Assembly: GCA_020891255.1 (NCBI GenBank)
Contig: BQFW01000007.1
Span: 2,418,001-2,482,000, forward strand
Direction of reading: 5' to 3'
Source: Entomortierella parvispora E1425
Lineage: Eukaryota > Fungi > Mortierellomycota
DNA length: 64,000 nucleotides
Position numbers and translations under genes: made by a program. Each line of letters begins with the position of its first letter. The first letter of the stretch is position 1. Positions 29,341-40,716 of this stretch are shown here, piece after piece. Under the pieces are notes generated by a model that saw only the letters and a list, made by a program, of their open reading frames with translations, ran no database searches and was not told the origin of the DNA.

Positions 29341-32300
29341 CATTCCTCAGTCCTGACCTTCCTCCAAGGATTACGTCGAAGATCGTTCCTCTCCTTCGTT
29401 GTTCCACAGTTCCAACTCCTCGACATCCTCCCGTGATACTCACTGTTGCAACCTTCACGATCAGCCTTTCCAACTGTTGTGTTTCTTTCTCTCTGAAAGT
29501 TCCCAGGTAAAGAAATAGCACTCGAACATCATTCTTCTGTCCACCTCTTTATTCATTCACTCTCACGACCACATCCTTCCTTCTGCTCATCCTTGTCGTC
29601 GTACACAACGGATTTTTTTTTTTTTTTTTTTTTTTTTGATTTTGAACCTCAAAAGGGTGGCTGGCAAACAGAAAAAAAAGCCTTGCGACACAAGGGCTCT
29701 GAAAGGTCTTCTTAGGCATTCTGTTGTTCCCCTTTCCTCAACAACCCCCTCTTGCACCGAAGCGGGCCACAACAACGGCAACACCAGTCTCCAACATTCC
29801 TCGTCTTGGGATGGGTGGGCTCTGTTTCGTCCTTGTTTCTTTTTTGTCTTTTGGTCATTTTTTTTTTTTTTGGACCGCTTGGTCCCAGGGACACAAACCA
29901 GAGTAGGAATCATCTTTGTTTTCGTGTGTGGTACATTCCTGCTCTTCCACTCGGCTGAGCTGTCGTTACTTTGGAGCTTGAATAATTTCAGCCTCCAGGT
30001 GAAGGTGAGAAATGAGCGCGCGCGCCAGAGAGAGGGAGAGAGAGCTGGAAAGGGGAAGGTGGAAATCGAAAGGGGAACATACCGAAAGGAGAAACACTTG
30101 GTTCGGGCTAGAAGGGATAAAAAGGTCTTTGACATGTTTACCACTCCGCGCCCCAACGGTTGTCCGTGTGGCCCTGCAGAGAAGAATCGATCACCATTCC
30201 AAAGGGTCAGAAGGGCGTAATCTTCATGTTTTTTTTACTTCGAATTTTGAACAGAGGTCATATGGTGCGCCGCGCCCACAGACCCCAGATTCTTTTGTTG
30301 TTTCTCTACTTCTCTGCCTCATACTTCACTATGCCCCTCTGCACTCCCTCCTCGTGGAAGAAGGGGCATGCGCGGTCCACAAGGGCCAATGCAACAAACA
30401 TTGCTGACAGATGACTGTCCGTAGGAAAGAGACGAAAAAGGGGTGGAGTGGGGTGGGCAGCTGAGTGCAGCAAAACAAATGAACCAATGCAAGATTCAGG
30501 TGTGTTCATCTCCCACGTCTTCCTCTCTCCCCCGATAAGTGTAATCGCAACCACAAATAAGAAGAGAAGGACGTCTTTGGTTCCTTTCTCTGTTGGCATC
30601 CAAACATAGACATCTGAAAGGAGGGCACAGAGAGAAAGAGAGAGAGATAGAGAGGAAACAGTCTTTGGATCAATAGCTTTTTCAATGTGGCCGAGAAGCG
30701 CATTCAGTAGATGGCATTCAGTAGATGTGAACGCATTGATACAGGACCGTTCTTCATCACGCCCTCGACAGTCGTTCCCCTCTTCTCCCTTCATTGAGGC
30801 AGAAGGCAAAAAGGGGCACTCGAAACACCCTTGCGCATCTTTTCCAATCGTTCTCTCATTTGTTCGTTTACTTCGTTTGCTCAAGGAGGCGTACTGTCGC
30901 GACTTTTAATCATAAAACCATTATGCGGACGCCTTGGGGGTGGACACAGGGGAGGCGCCATCTTTGTTCATAACCTCACAGTGGACGGACTTGTAGGAAA
31001 AAAACAAGTGACTGAAGAGGAACCAGATCAGGCGAAAAAGGGGTGAAGGCAAACTGAAAACGACCAGGCAAAAAAGGAGACGAGGCTGGACCGCGAAAGG
31101 AGATCGTGTTTGTGAAAAAAAGCGGCCGTTGGGTGCAGGGCCATGGTCTGTGTTCCATTCGGGTTGGGAGGATGCTAGTTCCATCCCTCAAGGTGGCGAT
31201 GACGATGACGATGACGACGATTCTGGACTTGGGACTGGCTGGAAAAGAGGGAGGGAAGGAGGAAAGAAGGAAAGGAAGGAGGCAGGAAAGGGCGGGAGCG
31301 GGATCGTTGGGCAGAATGGAGAGCCCGACAGGAAGAAACAGCTTTTTGGGGAAGGGAAGTCGCGTTGGTGGTGAAGGTCCTTCCCAGTCCGACACAGGGA
31401 CGGTCAAAGGTTCCTCCCAAGTACCGGCACTGCTGTGCACTCTCCCCCCCCCTCATCCCATCCTGCCAGGCATGCCCTGTCCCCTGTTTGCTCGCGCTAG
31501 ATCCTGAGCGGGTATTCTGTCCCATTCCAAGGAAGGCAACATTTCCCGCACTCCAGAGGCAGAGAGAGAAGAGAGGATCGATGGATGACATTACGCCTCT
31601 CACTTCGTCTGGGCACCAGCTGCCGACGGAGCCAGGAAAAATTGAAAAATGAGGGGATGATGGACATCCTTGCTTACTTCCCGGGCCACCTTCGGTCATT
31701 GCTCTCAGACTTGCATCTCCGTATTCTTTCTTTCCTTCCTCCTTTTGCTTGGTTGTCTGTGTACGACCGGCCTGTCCGGAGATCATATTAAAACAACAAG
31801 GACGTCGTCTACTTTCCCCACTCTCTTTCCTCTCTTTCTTTTCTTCTTTGTCACCCTTCCTCCAAGGAAAAAAACGCCCACATCGATCGTCCAACCAAAC
31901 CACATCCGACGACCCTTGCATCCACATTCGCTCCCACATCCTCACCTTCCGTTCATCCTCCCCTTCAGAGCTTGGACTATCACGCGCACCCACCATTGTT
32001 GATATTGACGCTTTTCTTCTCTCCTCTCCTGGAAATTCTATCTGTCATCGCATCACATCCCACCTGCAGATATTAAAAAAAATCATCGCCGACATACATA
32101 TTCATTCATCCTTCCGACCATCATTCCACCCATGACCGCCTTCTCGAGCACGTCGAAGCAATCGACCTTTATCCAAACACCTCTTCCTTCTTTCACTTCC
32201 AACGACTCTGCACCATTAGCATCCACTACAACTGTGCCTTCCCCCGTACAACCCATCCTTGCCTACCCTGCCTCTACATCTTCACTCTCACCAACATCCT

Positions 32301-34426
32301 CAACCTCCTCCATCACATCCCTCTCCATTTCCCGAGCACCTTTACCTCACTCATCCTCCGCGTCTCGGCCTCCACCACCCATTATGACCAACAGCAGCAA
32401 AAGGAGCAAAGAAGAGGTAAATTGTTAGACAAGAACAGACGACCGAACCAACAAGCACTTTTGCCCCTTGGAGTCGATTCATGTCCCGACGACCAAACGC
32501 TCCTTTTTTTTATGGTTCCTTGATTTCTTTCGTCTTCTTCTTCCCCTCACGCGAGTTTGGGCGCAGGACTCAGACAAGGAGATCAGGAGCTGACATGTCA
32601 TCTTGACTCTGCGCCCGCCGCTGCCGTGGGATCAATGGGCAGAAACTTGAGGAGTCAACAAAAAAAAACACAAGACATATTTTGAGTGTCAGCAACAATC
32701 AATAAGGTGTCGTCCGAAGTAAACGGACACGCCAAAGAGGACGAAACCAAATCACAAGAACAAAGCACCAAGTGAGGATGCACCAAACAACCAAAGCATC
32801 AACAACAATTGCGATGCTTACACATTCAGGAAACGAGGCGAGGCAGGGGGAACAGCCCAGGGGGGACTCATTTTGTGATACTTTGGACTTGCATATTGCA
32901 CTTTATGAACACACATATCTTTGTGCAGGCACACGTACCATCTTCATTTCATTCCTCCGCACTCTATCTCCATATCCTCATGTCATACATTGTATCGCCC
33001 ATCCATCGATCTTCTCCATCTGTCCCACAGTCATTGTAATTTCCTCTTCGCTTAAATCAAAACCAACACGGAGTTGTAGCCAAGTGGACGAGAGCTCTTA
33101 CCGTCTCAATTACAAGCGCGTCCCCTCGCGTCGAATTCTTTTTTTCGTTCTATTCTTCCTGCTTGTTGTTCATATTCAAACTTGTAATTGCAATTGGGTT
33201 TTTCGCATACCTTTGTCTCCGTGTAGATTCTGTGTGAATTAGTGGCAAACTTCTATGAAGTTGTATTGTGTAGACGCTAACACATCCCTTTCTTTTTTCT
33301 CTCCATGATTCAGGTCTGGCCCGACAACGTTGAGCAGGCGTTTATGGAAGGTAAGATACTCACATCCAAGCCCCCTGCTCCTCAATAGCCGACGGTACCC
33401 TGCATTTTTTTTTTTCAGTGTTCCTGGCTCTTGTAACGTTTCTCGCGCCCAACCTTATTCTCCGCATTCCTTCGCGCTGGAAGCACAACATGGAGAAAGT
33501 GTAATGTGGGATGATGTTTGGTTGTGTCGCACAAAGAATGAGCCATGGCGACGTTCTGGGCGAAGGAAAGAGTTGAATTTAGGCCGACCATGCCGTGCTG
33601 AGACCGTTTGAGCAGAGAGGGCTCTCTCCTTGAGTGTGAAATGAGAAAATTTTCAGGTGTCTGTTGTTTTTTTGCTGTTGTCGCTGTTGTTTTCCCTCTT
33701 TTGCTTTCTGTTTGGAAACACGGTGATTGTACTCTGTAAAGAAGAAAATCTTCTACGTTTTGTTTGTTCTTCTCCACGGTCTAAGTGTTCTGTGAGGCGT
33801 TAAAGAGAATGTCACTCTGTGTTGTCATTAGTACCGTTGAGTTGTTGATGTGGCCAGGAACTCCGTTCAAGTAGAATCGGGTAGTTGCGCGCGTGCATGT
33901 CGTTGATTGCAATTAGCGCGAAATTAATTTCCGTTGAACAATCGATCCATCTATCAGGATGAAGTGAATATAATTTATTGGAGACGCGTGGGTACCTCCT
34001 TCGATGTTCCTGGACCCTCTCTCTCCTTGGGGGTCTTGTCTGTGCATGGGTTACCCTGACCTCCCCGCCCGGGCCGCAATATCAACATTCCTGACATCCC
34101 TGTTGTTTGCAGCTGCTCAGATATCAATCGGGATGAATAATGACTATCTCATTCTTCCCCCCTCTCGCGTGCAGTTGACTAACCTCGAAAGTCTAACTTT
34201 GTCCTCTGTTTCCCCATTCACCCTCGCCCCCTGCCTACGGCTCACGCTCCACGTTGGTTTCCAATTGCTTTTCCGCTCCACTGCGGTATGGATCATGTCA
34301 ACAGCTCTCGTAAAAATCCCAAAGCTCGGACGGAGAAAAGTTGTCGTGGACACCAAGCCTTGTGGTACGTAAAGACGATGATTGTATGGAGTAGAAAAGA
34401 CTATATGACAAATATATATGCATTCT
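29341..34426 (+). promoter_or_regulatory. Cluster of CATTCY (TEA/AbaA-type binding) hexamers upstream of and within the TEA gene
   Basis: 13 plus-strand copies read by eye at 29341, 29530, 29717, 29795, 29934, 30195, 31523, 32122, 32950, 33465, 34086, 34150 and 34421. Function is inferred. Confidence 0.35.
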
Positions 34427-35973
34427 GTACTTTGTGGGCCAGATACCCCGAGATACCTGTTTTAGCGTTTAATTGGTGTACGGTAATCATGTTCCATCCG
34501 GGTACCCCAGCTGGCTCTAATATATTTCATTTTCCGGTATTAGGTCGAAACGAGCTGATTGCTGCCTACATTCACAAACAAACCGGTCGATGGAGAACAC
34601 GGAAACAAGTGTCCTCACATATTCAAGTTCTCAAGAATACGCGAAAGGATGACCAGCGGTGTAAGTGTGCCGAGACCATGAAGGTAGTTGCACGTCAGCC
34701 TGCAAAGGACACGCTCTAACGCTAACTCTACATAGTGATGGATCTCCTGTCGGATGCATCGGTGGATGAGGGCGATGATGCGGCCATGCTGTTGGCTGCA
34801 CTTGGGACGAGCAGTATTATGTACGGGGAGAGCAGTAGCCCGCAAATATCACCAGTCTCGCCTACGGGGAGTGTTACTGCGCGTTTCGAGCGATTGGACA
34901 ATTCTTCTTCCCCCGAGATTGAGGATGAGAGGAAGCCGACCCACCATCGTCAACTTTCCATTGCCTCCATTCTCAATCCGGATATGGAGACAGAGTCGCA
35001 GCAGCTACAACAACAACAACCGCAACAACAACATTTCCACCAGCAGTTCCAACAACTACCACCGTCTCATCGTCACCATTTTCGTTCCCATTCTCAACAC
35101 TATCAGCGACCTCGTCGAAACACTTCCTCTGTGGAGATGTATTCATATTCGACGCGCGACAATATCTACGAGGAGGCTTCGTTCGAGCAAACAGCACATG
35201 GCGCACCGCATCCAACACAGTTGCCATCGATGGAAAGAGCAGGCTCAGGCAAGAGACGTCCGAGTCAGGAAGGGTATGATCCAGCGCGATCCTATTTCAG
35301 CGAAAGGTTTTCCTACTGGCCTTGTCAGTTCAAGCTCACTCAAGAGGAGCGGAGGCCACCACACGCCGAGGTACATTTCGAATGGCAATAGTTTGATCTA
35401 TCACATCTCGTTATGAAAAAACTTGCTCACGATGTCTATGACTCTCTTAGAATGCATTGCCCAGGGAGATCTTGTTGTCCGGTAGCGATGCTCCTTTTCA
35501 GGACAACATGGAGTGTGTGCCAATCAGCGCTTTGAGCGACTCTCAATTTCCACACATCAAGGAAGCATTCCAGAGAAAAAAAGCCCTTCATCTGAACTAT
35601 AAGGTGAGCTTCGTTCAGTCCATGCCGATGTCTTAGTGTACTGGATAGTACTAACGTGGCGTCGATACCATAGGTTGGATTGAACCTCGGGAGCTCAGTA
35701 AACACCACGAGGGTTTTGACAAGGAATCTTTTTCAGTCGACTGAACGATACACAGTAATGTGCACTACAAGAGTGTTTTCCTTTGGCAATCAGGTCGTGG
35801 AGAGTCAAGAGACACAGCAGGCGGCTTTCTATGGCGGTCGATACGTGTATTCCTTCAAGATGGTCAATGAGTGGTTTTACACCTTCCTACAGACCTTGAA
35901 TGACGGCCGATCTTTGGATGAGGCTCAAGCATCGCTGCGAAATATCACTATTCTGCAGGTAAGCTTGCGGCCT

Positions 35974-36008
<35 letters not shown>

Positions 36009-36795
36009 GCATTCTTTCGAATTATGGTCGAGTGTTATGAATCTCAGTGTCGGCGTTCTCAATCCCGTCCTTTTTTTTTAATAGGAATTTGACCGTCTAT
36101 CAGCTGGCCCTGCCCTCCCAGAGTGGGATTCAGAAGCAGAGTGCCTGCTTGTGGTTGCGTACCAATTCAATGCTTCGAATCAGGGAGGCATGACAGGCTA
36201 CCGATTGACAGACGACGCAGCACCTCTGTCCAAGGTTTCAACCTTTGCCCGGACTCGCGCCAATACGTGGGATAACTCTAGCATGGCTTTTAGCAGGAAC
36301 TTCGGCAGCGGCGGTGCAGGCCCAGGCATTCGAAGGCCAATACAATCTCCAGATCAGAGTCAGCTCTTTGGCTCCCCGGGTGGCTCATCCGCCAGATATG
36401 GTTCACCACTTTACCACGACGACCCATGGGCACGTCATCACCCTCCAACACCATACCAGCATCAACTTCAGAATCAACTTCAGCATCACCCTTTGACAGA
36501 AACTGTCCACAGATCACCCGTGATGTTCCAAGAATATACCCCTGCACCGCTGGAGCCTAGGTTACGATGCAGCAAACGCAGTTCCATGGACATGCGGGAT
36601 GGAGACCGACGCGATCAGTACTATCAAGCGCAGCAGGACGAATACGAGCGACCTCCACAGCGTCCAATGCACTCGGTGTCTCCATTACCTCCTTCGGGTC
36701 AATATATTGCTCATGGAGCCTCTAGTCCAGGATTACCAGAGCCCAAAAAGTTCTGCGTCTATCCCAGAAAAGGAATCAGATCCACATTTTCATAG
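32132..36795 (+). CDS. TEA/ATTS-domain transcription factor with a TEAD-like C-terminal (YAP-binding-type) domain, multi-exon
   Basis: Spliced TEA domain [12 protein letters not shown]|[14 protein letters not shown]|[30 protein letters not shown]. The C-terminal region reads [38 protein letters not shown]. Confidence 0.9.
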
Positions 36796-36907: not shown

Positions 36908-39561
36908 TTATGGACGATGAGCTGCCTGCTCTGCACGTTCAGCCTTCAATTGGGCCTCTTGAGCCAAACGCTCCGCCTCCAGTTTGGCCATCTTGGCCTT
37001 CTCGAGCTCAGCCTCTCTCTTGGCCAACTCATGCAACCGCTTCTTGGCCTCATCAGCCTCCTTCTTTGCCTGGGCGGCCGCGACCTTTGCTTGCTGGTCT
37101 TGTTGCTTCTTCAGCTTGTCTGCCGCAGCCTTCTCTACAGCAGCCTTCTTTGCTTGGGCAGCCTTCTCTTCAGCAATGATCTTGTCCTGGGCAGCCTTGA
37201 CTGCTGCCTCATGCTTCTTGTTCTCTGCTTCCAATCGAGCTGTGTGGGCCTTGGCCTCGGCCTCCAATTTGGCCTCCAAAGCGGCTTTCTTCGCGGCTGC
37301 CTCCTTTTCGATCGCGGCCTGCTCGAGATTGCGCTTCTTCTTGGAGGCCACCTCCAACTTTGCAGCCTTAACCTCAGCAGCTTTTTGTTCAGCCTCGCGA
37401 CGCGCAGCCTCTCTTTTCTCCAAAGCAACGCGCTCCTTCTCACGCTTGATGGCATCCGCTTCCTCCTTGGCGCGAGCTGCTTTCTCGGCGGCCAAACGTT
37501 TGGCCTCTTCCTTGGCGTGGCGCTTCTGTTCTTCGACCAAGCGGGCTTGCTCAGCCTTCTCGGCCGCCTTGCGGTCAGCCTCTTCCTTGTCCTGGCGCTT
37601 CTTGAGGGCAGCGGCGGCCTTGGCTTGTTCAACCTTCTCGGCTGCGAGTCTCTTTTGTTCCGCCTTCTCCTGTTCCTTCTTCTCTGCAGCCTGCTTTGCC
37701 AACAGGGCTTTCTCGGCCGCCTTGCGATCGGCCTCCTCCTTCTCCTGCTGCTTCTTTTCAACTGCGAGACGCACCTGCTCTGCCTTCTCGGCGGCCTTCT
37801 GGGCAGCCAGCTCTTCATCCTGACGCTTCTTCAATGAAGCCGCCGCCTTGGCCTCGGCTGCTTTCTCATAAGCGATTCTGGCGGCCTGATCAATCTCGGC
37901 CTGCTTCTTGAGGTGTTCCTTCTCGACTTGCTCGGCCCTCTTGTGGAGCTCCTCCTTGTCATGTTGCTCTTTCTCATAGACCTCTACCTTCAGCTTCTCG
38001 GCCTTGTTGGCAGCGTCCTTGGCCTCGTCTTCGAGTGCGCGCTTCTTGTGCTCAGATTCCTTCTGAGCCGACTGGATCTTGACCTGATCCGCCTTGTTGG
38101 ACTCCTTGAGCTTCTGATCCACGTACTTTTGGGCATCTTGGGCCTTTTGGTCAGCGAGCTTCTTGGCAGCATCGACCGCCTTTAGAGCATCCTTTTGTTT
38201 CTGCTCTGCCAACTTTTGGGCCTCCTGGGTCTTCTGATCCAACAGCTTGGAGGCATCCTTCAGGTGCTGTTCTTGGGCGTCGTGATAAGAGTCGACCTTG
38301 TCCTGGACAAACTTTTGAGCATTGTTGAGGGCCTGCTGAGACTGTTTCTTGGCATCGCTCAGGGCCTGTTGGGATTGCTTCAGGGTCTCCTCGGTGGCGT
38401 GGTGGACAGAGTCCAAGAGATCATCGGTGGAAGCGTGCAGCTGATCCAATTGACGCTTGGCCTTCTTGGTCAAGTCCTCCTGTGACTCATGGAGGGCATG
38501 AGAGGCCGAGCTGGCCGCTTGGATGACAGCTTCCTTGGCACCGTGGATCGAATCTGCGGCCTCTTCGGCCAAGCTTCGCTTCTCCTTGGCTCCCCACCAC
38601 CATCGTTTTTGTTTTTGGGGGTGAAGGGTGTGATCGACCTTGTCTTGGACGGTATGGGCAGCTTGGGCGAAATCCTTCTTGAGCTGATCGACTTGGGCTC
38701 CAGCGACCTTGGACGCCTCATGAAGGACCGAGGCAGCAGCTCCGGCAGGGCCTGCCTCCGCCTTCTTTTTTTCCTTGTCATGATCAAACTCCCAGATCTC
38801 GACCTTTTCCTGGACAGCTCTCTTCAACTTGTCCAAGACGGGCAAAATCCTGAATGTGGCCTCTTCATCCTGTTCCTTCTTGTTATCAGGAGAGTGTCCC
38901 ACAGGACGGTCATTCTCCTCATCCTCGACCACGGCCTCATCGCCGCGACGGGCGTAAAAGTACCCGCCCGCCTTTTCAGCATTGGCCTCATCTTTCAGAT
39001 GAGCTTGGTGGATGGATTCTTTGACGTCATTGACCTTTTGTTGGATCTGATCCACGATGCCGAATTTGAAATAGGGCTCATCTCCATGACCGGATCCGGC
39101 CGTGTGGACCATGGTCGCCAAAGTCCTCTTGGCGTTTCCGGCAGTAGCGGTGGCATGATCAGAATCGGTCTGGAAGGCGTAGGTGCCATGACCGATCGAA
39201 GTGGTGTGGTGTTGGTGTTGGTGGTGATGTTGGTCGTGAGGGTGGTGATGGGCTTCATTGTTGCCACAGGACTTTGAACCCTCCAGATGTGCCGGGCAAG
39301 CCTCAGAGAGGGGAAGATCATGTCCGTCTGCCAGGACAACCTCTTGAGGTTGATTGGAATGGCCGAACCATTTGGCGTCGACCGAACAAGAAGAGGTGGC
39401 CATGACCAAGGCCACAGCAGCGGCTAATAGCGTAGGAAAGAAGAAGGGTTTAGCCACATCCTGAGCACAAATGGATAGATTCATAATCAGATGGTGAAAA
39501 GAGGGCCAAAGTAGGACTTGTAACATCAAGGCGTACCGATGGATGTAACGTGGATCTTCAT
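36908..39561 (-). CDS. Secreted protein with a His-rich segment, dibasic sites, LEA-like helices and a long Lys/Ala/Glu charged helix, 2 exons
   Basis: ATG 39561 plus one intron gives the signal peptide MKIHVTSIAAAVALVMATSSCSVDA-KWF. The remainder is one long ORF to 36908. Confidence 0.8.
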
Positions 39562-40716
39562 TGTAAAAGCTGAAAGCGAGATATATATACAAGAGTCGTT
39601 TGTTTCGAGATGAGATTGTTTGTTCGAGCTATGGACAGTGGTTGAGTAAAGTCCAGGCGGAGTAAGGGGAAAGATAAGATGGGGTTTATACAAGTCAAGG
39701 ATGTGTGTGCAAGGTGAACAAAAAAAGTATGAAGATTTTCTTGGGCGTGGAAGTAAAGAAATAACAATCAAATAAAGATGCGAAAGAGAGAAAAAAAAGA
39801 TGGGTAGGGGCAAGAGGGGCTATGAGTCGCCAGGTTTTTTTTAATGCAGAAAGTATAGGCGTTGGATGTTGTTAGGAGGAGGATGATTGCATTATTATGA
39901 GGCAATGAAGGACTGAACTGGCGCCGAATCACAGCCTAAGAAGAGGAAGAGGGGCGAAACCCAGGAGAACGCGTCGTGCGGTGTCTCAACGCGAGGGGCA
40001 GGAAAATGTTTTTTTTTTTTTTATTTGGTTGGTGGCGGTGGAGGTTGGGCGTAGCTTTGTGTGTCTGAAGGTGACAGGTGAGAAGGTGAGAAGGTGAGAA
40101 GGTACGCAAAGCGAGCATCTCTTCTTTTTATCGGCCACGCGTCTGTAGTCGTGTTGATTCGTCTACGGAAGAACATTAGAACAGCACACGATCGATCAGG
40201 TTGCAGCACCGGCATCGGACGAGAAAGGCAAAGGCGGCAAGAGAACACAAGAGATCGGCACGTGAACGCGGCGCGCTGATTGGCCAGCACGGACTGCTCA
40301 CCTCTCTGGTGCCATCCAGCCCTCCAGCGGGCAGCAGTTCTTGGGTGTTCTGTGCCACTTATAAGGTGCCTGCCTCTTTGCACGGGCAGAGAAAGAACCC
40401 ACCCACCCACCTACCTACACCTACCTAAACTGACACCTGTGCTGACTTGACTTGACTCTCTTCTTCTCCACACATTCATCGCATTGCGCACTTGCATTGC
40501 GTCTTTCACTTTCCTTCTCTCTTCTCGCTTCTGTCTTCTCGCTTCATTTGTCTCTTTGTCTCTTTGTCTCTTTGTTCCTCGTCATTCTTCCCTTCAACCT
40601 ACACCGTCGCTACTTCAACACACCTTCATTCCTTTTCCGTGTCTCGCTCGCTCGTCTACCTACATTCTAAAACCTACGCAGCTGGCCTCTCTTTCCTTCG
40701 TCCCTATTCATTCAAC

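Follow-up and report, generated by a model that had tools for sequence, protein, structure and literature searches.

What could a YAP-binding domain bind in a fungus, when, in contrast to the metazoan TEAD system, no YAP or Yorkie has been reported from fungi? This question is raised by a gene of Entomortierella parvispora E1425 (assembly GCA_020891255.1), located on contig BQFW01000007.1. Here, a stretch of 64,000 nucleotides of this contig (positions 2,418,001 to 2,482,000 of the forward strand), referred to as the window, was analysed, and all positions are counted from its first letter. The gene encodes a fungal TEA factor, which carries a true homolog of the YAP-binding domain (YBD) of the animal TEAD proteins, as confirmed by profile, by the sequences of solved structures and by the predicted fold. 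An earlier inspection of the letters, the sequence-only reading, had pointed to this domain and had suggested that a fungal co-activator binds to it as an ancestral output module of Hippo-type signalling.

A TEAD-type domain downstream of the TEA domain

Within the whole protein, the Pfam TEA/ATTS profile PF01285 matches residues 93-160 over its full length (profile positions 1-68) with an E-value of 2.5e-29 and 101.8 bits against a cut-off of 25.1. Downstream of this TEA domain, the Pfam YBD profile PF17725 matches residues 396-558 with an E-value of 4.3e-9 and 36.9 bits (cut-off 23). Taken alone, exon 7 is matched by the same YBD profile with an E-value of 3e-8 and 34.1 bits (cut-off 23), and in a phmmer search with this exon against the sequences of the PDB, TEAD1-4 and Scalloped were the only matches, the best at 3e-9 to TEAD1 chains. 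The printed alignment of exon 7 with TEAD1 reproduces the TEAD string that had been used for a collinear alignment by eye, and the peptides quoted with it are all present on the + strand and in frame, in exon 7 (including LRNITILQ) and exon 8 (including GYRLTD). Furthermore, a profile built from 45 YBDs (42 fungal and three animal) aligns end-to-end with TEAD4 chains, at an E-value that the three animal rows make too favourable.

The fold was predicted with AlphaFold2 for the domain of the closest ortholog, from Gryganskiella (P0001:216-448), which resulted in a model with a predicted local distance difference test (pLDDT) score of 91 and a predicted TM-score (pTM) of 0.88. A Foldseek search of the PDB with this model returned TEAD YAP-binding domains (TEAD1-4) for all of its best 50 matches, with an E-value of 1.2e-17 and TM-scores of 0.72/0.80. 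The sequence-only reading had staked its claim on a profile or structural match to TEAD, and both were found. A feature search of the ESM Atlas with exon 7 yielded bacterial DUF6642 clusters only, with scores below 0.9, which were discarded as chance.

The homologous domain comprises residues 360-567, from YWPCQFKL to GYRLTD, and is encoded by exons 5-8 at 35314..36213 on the + strand, as delimited by Pfam, the profile alignment and the fold of the ortholog. The extent given before, 35451-36213, is correct at its right end, where GYRLTD ends at 36213, and its left end coincides with the start of exon 6; the domain itself starts about 140 bases earlier, in exon 5. The terminal tyrosine, noted as the residue that contacts YAP in animals, is indeed present as Y563. 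The domain is, however, not C-terminal, since 193 residues follow GYRLTD.

Like metazoan TEAD1-4 and Drosophila Scalloped, the protein shows the order of TEA domain and then YBD, the same YBD fold and collinearity across the whole domain. The core motifs C..SFG.QVVE, GRYVY, N.TILQ and LL..AY.F are shared, and the equivalents of TEAD4 K297 and Y429 are kept. In contrast to the animal proteins, which end after the YBD, this gene encodes the additional tail, the identity to animal YBDs is only 22-27%, C367 is replaced by Asn and K344 by Ser, and several residues of the pocket and of the groove are changed. The TEA region is of the fungal type (IPKLGRRK...) and is 71-85% identical to that of TEA proteins from Mucoromycota and Dikarya.

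Distribution in fungi and the diverged domain of Dikarya

Among 1.84 billion protein representatives, a phmmer search with exon 7 identified 133 matches, of which 30 were looked up for names (one of these, P0061, is nameless in any source). Among these 30 are Mortierellaceae, with several paralogs per genome, the Mucorales Mycotypha, Blakeslea, Pilobolus, Cokeromyces, Spinellus, Absidia, Zychaea, Hesseltinella and Dichotomocladium, as well as Bifiguratus, Neocallimastix (named 'YAP binding domain-containing protein' in UniRef) and the chytrids Quaeritorhiza and Polychytrium. Judged by sequence, other matches are animal TEADs. A word-index homolog search with the YBD region found four proteins only and was too insensitive; the distribution was therefore taken from the protein-representative search and from searches anchored on the TEA domain. 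In the latter, most TEA proteins of Mortierellomycotina and Mucoromycotina carry precomputed PF01285 and PF17725 annotations, while Dikarya entries carry PF01285 only. Both annotations are also present on a paralog, P0211, and on P0157, the GenBank/UniRef entry 'transcriptional enhancer factor [Entomortierella parvispora]' with 760 residues. P0157 is the product of the very gene described here, so the guess that the domain might already be annotated was right.

In a maximum-likelihood tree of 46 YBDs, the fungal domains are monophyletic with respect to the animal ones (100/100). The gene falls into a long-branched Mortierellaceae clade of ten members, separate from the clade in which Mucoromycotina group with the other Mortierellaceae paralogs. 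The architecture PF01285+PF17725 is shared with the other early-diverging fungal proteins, namely the Mucor lusitanicus Tec1/Tec2 family, the Mortierellaceae paralogs ending in ...DGSDMLE.LVC and Neocallimastix, and a common signature is Asn at the position of the acyl-Cys, Tyr or Phe at C335 and Phe or Trp at Y369. Different from these proteins, the gene belongs to the separate, longer-branched clade with a tail, a remodelled groove and an HxRxxS motif in the linker. In the second Mortierellaceae clade (P0038, P0045, P0046, P0014 and others), the proteins end with ...F.IADGSDMLE[ST]L[VM]C just past the last YBD strand; this C-terminal motif is present neither in animal TEADs nor in this gene. 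The linker of one of these paralogs, P0045 from Gryganskiella, contains an HxRRxS site (SHPRRLSLSS).

According to PMC4761220, which summarises Sebe-Pedros et al. 2012, Sd/TEAD dates back to the unikont ancestor, and Yorkie belongs to holozoans; for Yorkie, an origin at the filozoan ancestor has been given (PMC13366479). Because of this early origin of TEAD, the existing annotation and the wide fungal distribution, the YBD of this gene is neither new nor unexpected; its presence is ordinary and already part of public annotation. Among the papers accessible to it, a literature search found none that explicitly describes the YBD of fungal TEA proteins. In the title of PMC13576993, Tec1 and Tec2 of Mucor lusitanicus are reported as factors of hyphal growth and virulence. 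What is added here is a picture at residue level (no acyl-acceptor Cys or Lys, an unconserved YAP pocket and a conserved helix groove), a cryptic YBD in several Dikarya relatives, conserved motifs of kinase type and a verified gene model with eight exons. The remaining interest is modest and rests on the partner of the fungal YBD. Identifying a conserved partner of the fungal TEAD-fold domains, if there is one, would reveal the function of the TEAD platform at a time when YAP/Yorkie did not yet exist, which bears on how the Hippo output was assembled; in Mucorales, it would open an approach to the TEA regulators that govern growth form and virulence.

The Dikarya require a separate consideration, as it had been taken as established that Aspergillus AbaA and yeast Tec1 lack the domain. 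The TEA domain of AbaA/Tec1-type proteins is near-identical to that of this gene (IPKLGRRK...CGRNELIA.YI....). At the sensitivity of Pfam the statement holds, since the Pfam YBD model, which detects the domain of this gene, has no match in Dikarya TEA proteins. However, a profile built solely from fungal YBDs scores 40 bits in Trichomonascus ciferrii, 31.6 bits in Jaminaea rosea, 26 bits in the 'Transcription factor AbaA' of Taphrina deformans (residues 232-457, profile positions 12-205), 24 bits in 'Tec1p' of Trichomonascus vanleenenianus, 19 bits each in Saitoella and Protomyces and 8-11 bits in Pneumocystis; with this profile, the proteins from Lipomyces, Dipodascopsis and Cystobasidium were without signal.

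A second profile was made from 16 segments, 12 from named Dikarya (including Taphrina 'AbaA' and 'Tec1p' of Trichomonascus and Sugiyamaella) and four from unnamed metagenomic proteins. Compared with the YBD profile by hhalign, it reached a probability of 99.4% and an E-value of 7e-22 over 189 columns, and in the PDB full-length TEAD4 was its sole match, although a non-significant one (E 0.2). The Taphrina segment (P0264, residues 216-480) was modelled by AlphaFold2 with a pLDDT of 86, and the top Foldseek matches of this model are all TEAD YBDs (E 9e-12 to TEAD2, TM-scores of 0.58/0.72); the alignment used for modelling contained true YBDs and might have biased the model, from which the hhalign result is independent. 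The YBD is thus diverged, not absent, at least in Taphrinomycotina, in yeasts of the Trichomonascaceae type and in one ustilaginomycete, and homologous, though strongly diverged, YBDs are detectable in Taphrina 'AbaA', Pneumocystis, Saitoella, the 'Tec1p' proteins of Trichomonascus and Sugiyamaella, and Jaminaea. Here, the names AbaA and Tec1 are given by homology, and the comparison covers these proteins and not S. cerevisiae Tec1 and A. nidulans AbaA themselves. The Dikarya TEA proteins with a diverged TEAD-fold domain missed by Pfam include P0264, P0276, P0292, P0281 and P0210.

Binding surfaces and candidate partners

The residues of TEAD4 were read off the TEAD4 chain in the alignment of the 45 YBDs, and this numbering was checked against the residues named in PMC5400505, from which their roles in TEAD4 were also taken. 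None of the lipid sites is kept in this protein, since C367 is replaced by Asn (N494), K344 by Ser and C335 by Phe. The acyl-Cys position (TEAD4 C367, TEAD1 C359) is occupied by Asn in 15/15 Mucoromycotina and in 16/16 members of the second Mortierellaceae clade; the clade of this gene has Asn or Asp there, and a Gly in one chytrid row is the sole exception to Asn/Asp among the fungal YBDs examined. The K344 position is Ser or Ala in fungal YBDs.

Within the omega-loop pocket, the interface 3 that binds YAP/TAZ in animals, five of the 11 positions examined are kept in this protein, E263 (E399), V265 (V401), D272 (D408), K297 (K429) and Y429 (Y563), and six are changed (Q269A, K273Q, L295N, W299G, V414Q and H427T). 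Apart from K297 and Y429, the kept residues vary among close orthologs. In the nine closest ones, Q/E/P/G are found at E263, R/E/Q/K at V265 and E/D/S/T at D272, with Gly at W299, Glu or Gln at V414 and Arg or Asn at L295. The pocket is unconserved across fungi as well, with Lys or Gly at W299, Glu or Asp at V414 and a variable D272, and in Mucoromycotina the position of Y429 is occupied by S/F/A/T. The conserved tyrosine is thus real but weak evidence for a contact of YAP type, because the surrounding pocket is not conserved.

The helix groove, or interface 2, shows a different pattern. In this protein F337 (F466), F373 (F500) and L377 (L504) are kept, with the changes Y369W, K376T, L380G and V389S. 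The aromatic residues of the groove are found in all fungal rows, with Phe (two Tyr) at F337, Phe (three Tyr) at F373 and Phe at Y369, or Trp in the clade of this gene. The remaining fungal rows show an invariant L380 and an invariant Ala at the V389 position; the L377 position is almost always Ile or Val there, and the K376 position is Gly except in one chytrid row. Judged by these residue patterns, the groove is a better candidate than the omega pocket for a conserved interaction surface of fungi.

Apart from the domains, short motifs are conserved in the clade of this gene. The block [RK]P.H.RQ[LVI]SIAS[IM]LNP is the only part of the linker of about 190 residues that is conserved in every ortholog of the clade. 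In this protein it covers residues 236-248 (34942..34980, + strand), where H236-x-R238-x-x-S241 fits HxRxxS, the consensus of the NDR/LATS-family kinases. S241 in H236-H-R-Q-L-S241 might therefore be a site of such a kinase. After the YBD, the motif RTRANTWD (residues 580-587, 36250..36273, + strand; R[AT]R[SA][HN]TWD in orthologs) contains an RxRxxT with T585 and could be another phospho-site. According to the alignment of orthologs, the tail ends with the blocks KRSS[ML]D (residues 688-693) and a basic block at residues 742-760 (together 36574..36792, + strand), the latter possibly a nuclear localisation signal; shorter orthologs end in related blocks, KRPSLEFEQEWPPQPKKxRR. In the proteins of this clade, the YBD is followed by 70-300 residues; most other fungal and animal proteins end within about 25 residues of it.

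From the gene model, the homology and fold of the domain, its distribution and the residue patterns, we infer a mode of action for which DNA target, partner, binding site and phosphorylation are all to be read as conditional. The factor consists of the TEA domain (residues 93-160), a disordered linker, the immunoglobulin-like TEAD-fold YBD (residues ~360-567) and the tail. Its YBD descends vertically from the ancestor that fungi and animals share and is the normal state in TEA proteins of Mucoromycota and chytrid-grade fungi. While the TEA domain is expected to bind CATTCC-type sites, the YBD would serve as a docking platform for a cofactor other than YAP. Since the acyl-acceptor Cys and Lys are replaced, it is proposed that the fungal YBD is not lipid-anchored. 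The omega-loop pocket, the source of YAP affinity, is not under conservation in fungi, and the groove formed by F337, Y369, F373, L377, L380 and V389 (TEAD4 numbering) is the surface that is near-invariant in most fungal YBDs. In animal TEADs, it is this groove that accommodates the YAP, TAZ and Vgll helices. The clade of this gene is fast-evolving and specific to Mortierellaceae, with a partly remodelled groove (T503, G507 and S516). Together with the added tail, the conserved motifs of basophilic-kinase type (HxRxxS in the linker and RxRxxT after the YBD) suggest that control may act directly on the factor. Taken together, the preferred reading, with a probability of about 0.6, is a DNA-binding TEA factor in which the TEAD-fold domain, free of lipid, docks a cofactor other than YAP, with a groove that is conserved in fungi and remodelled here, and with regulation that may run via the basophilic sites and the tail.

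Several points weigh against this reading. The fold was predicted for the Gryganskiella ortholog, which is 73% identical in the YBD, and not for the sequence of the window itself. The conservation of the groove may partly be structural, as the exchanges Y369A and L377A destabilise TEAD4 (PMC5400505). The equivalence of D408 with D272 hinges on a one-residue gap. A binding of omega-loop type is possible for this one protein, because E399, V401, D408, K429 and Y563 are kept. Finally, expression and splicing of the gene rest on public annotation and on colinearity with orthologs.

The last but one of these points leads to the proposal of the sequence-only reading. Here, the YBD would still bind a YAP/Yorkie-like co-activator by omega-loop and helix, which has gone unrecognised in fungi, and the gene would be the output of an ancestral Hippo-type pathway. 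Chytrid-grade fungi reportedly possess the complete Hippo/Warts/Mats kinase cascade (PMC7035326), and among the five retained pocket positions are the hot-spot Asp D408, K429, E399 and the terminal Tyr, the latter kept in eight of the nine orthologs. The proposal goes beyond what can be shown and is partly contradicted by the pocket, as the positions of E263, V265 and D272 vary freely in these same orthologs, those of W299, V414 and L295 are changed, and the Tyr is lost in Mucoromycotina; moreover, the literature (PMC4761220, PMC13366479) puts the origin of Yorkie within holozoans. A YAP-type partner of the fungal YBD is thus quite unlikely. Somewhat less doubtful, but still unlikely, is a mainly intramolecular or structural role of the YBD in the clade of this gene, in which the tail or the linker motif would fold back onto the YBD and this auto-regulation would be released by phosphorylation, with no dedicated co-activator at the animal-type interfaces. 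This would fit the tail, which is extended in this clade alone, the short and strictly conserved motifs within an otherwise unconserved tail and linker, and a groove that is remodelled precisely here (K376 to T/S, L380 to G and V389 to S); recognition by kinases, 14-3-3 proteins or importins, however, would explain the motifs equally well.

Nothing was found in favour of an artefact of annotation or assembly, or of a TEAD fragment acquired horizontally from an animal, which came into consideration only for the striking similarity to animal TEAD; both are rejected on distribution and tree and retain next to no probability. The introns are of the fungal type, colinear orthologs are present in more than ten Mortierellaceae genera, and the low identity to animal YBDs goes along with the separate fungal clade. 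The preferred reading of a docking module for a non-YAP cofactor can also be extended, although such an extension is speculative and, as a whole, rather improbable. It would make the TEAD-fold domain pan-fungal, not a remnant confined to early-diverging lineages, and diverged beyond Pfam in AbaA/Tec1 of Dikarya, lipid-free and without an omega-loop partner, with the groove holding a fungal cofactor, and an NDR/LATS-type kinase would act via HxRxxS in the clade of this gene and thereby bypass YAP. Ste12 would be the obvious candidate for the cofactor, and its binding maps to the C-terminus of Tec1. In yeast, Tec1 and Ste12 form a heterodimer (PMC4619828).

Gene model and neighbouring features

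The gene consists of eight exons on the + strand, to which all following features belong unless stated otherwise. Its whole coding span, stop included, is 32132..36795, and the translation is identical to P0157 over all 760 residues. All seven introns are of the GT..AG type. Exon 1 (32132..32416, residues 1-95) encodes a Ser/Thr/Pro-rich N-terminus that ends with KEE just before the TEA domain and is followed by the donor GTAAAT; in a tblastn search, residues 1-96 of P0157 match 32132-32419 at 100% identity, with the first 95 residues at 32132-32416. Exon 2 (33314..33350, residues 96-107) encodes the first helix of the TEA domain, and owing to the exact match to P0157, CAG at 33311-33313 is its acceptor. 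Exon 3 (34305..34364, residues 108-127) is supported by translation and P0157, and exon 4 (34544..34660, residues 128-166), with the DNA-recognition half of the TEA domain, matches the Pfam TEA profile on its own at 2.3e-16.

Exon 5 (34736..35370, residues 167-378) encodes an acidic stretch, a linker rich in Gln and His, and the strand with which the YBD begins. By alignment, exon 6 (35451..35603, residues 379-429) carries the positions E399, V401, D408 and K429, equivalent to TEAD4 E263, V265, D272 and K297. Exon 7 (35674..35958, residues 430-524) contains the best-conserved core C459..F466 and the helix with N494 at the acyl-Cys position, and exon 8 (36085..36795, residues 525-760) encodes the last two strands of the YBD, which end with Y563-R-L, and then the tail. 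A model of seven exons and 668 residues, starting at an ATG at 33305, nine nucleotides upstream of exon 2, was ruled out by the upstream exon 32132-32416 of P0157; this shorter version is colinear with P0001 of Gryganskiella cystojenkinii at 68% identity.

The first two introns, 32417-33313 (897 nucleotides) and 33351-34304 (954 nucleotides), are unusually long and flank the micro-exon of 37 nucleotides for TEA helix 1; the remaining five have 70-179 nucleotides. Intron 2 holds an ATG-initiated open reading frame at 33504-33611 (+ strand), whose product resembles the first half of a TEA domain (VW ... GRRK-x6-PC), with a GT right after PC(C). The sequence WRRxGRRK also occurs in the N-terminus annotated for P0006, the ortholog from Entomortierella beljakovae (MLGEAWRRQGRRKV...). 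The frame may be a duplicate exon in decay, an alternative first exon or a product of chance. Within intron 7, between two YBD exons, an unbroken run of about 34 T is located at 35975-36008.

A convergent neighbour on the - strand, an open reading frame of 894 residues at 36908-39592, ends about 110 nucleotides from the stop of the TEA gene. The N-terminus of its product is hydrophobic, and a His-rich stretch is present together with Lys/Ala/Glu-rich repeats (AAEKAEQ..., KKRQDKEEADRKAAEKAEQ) that extend over several hundred residues. The product looks like a long charged coiled-coil protein.

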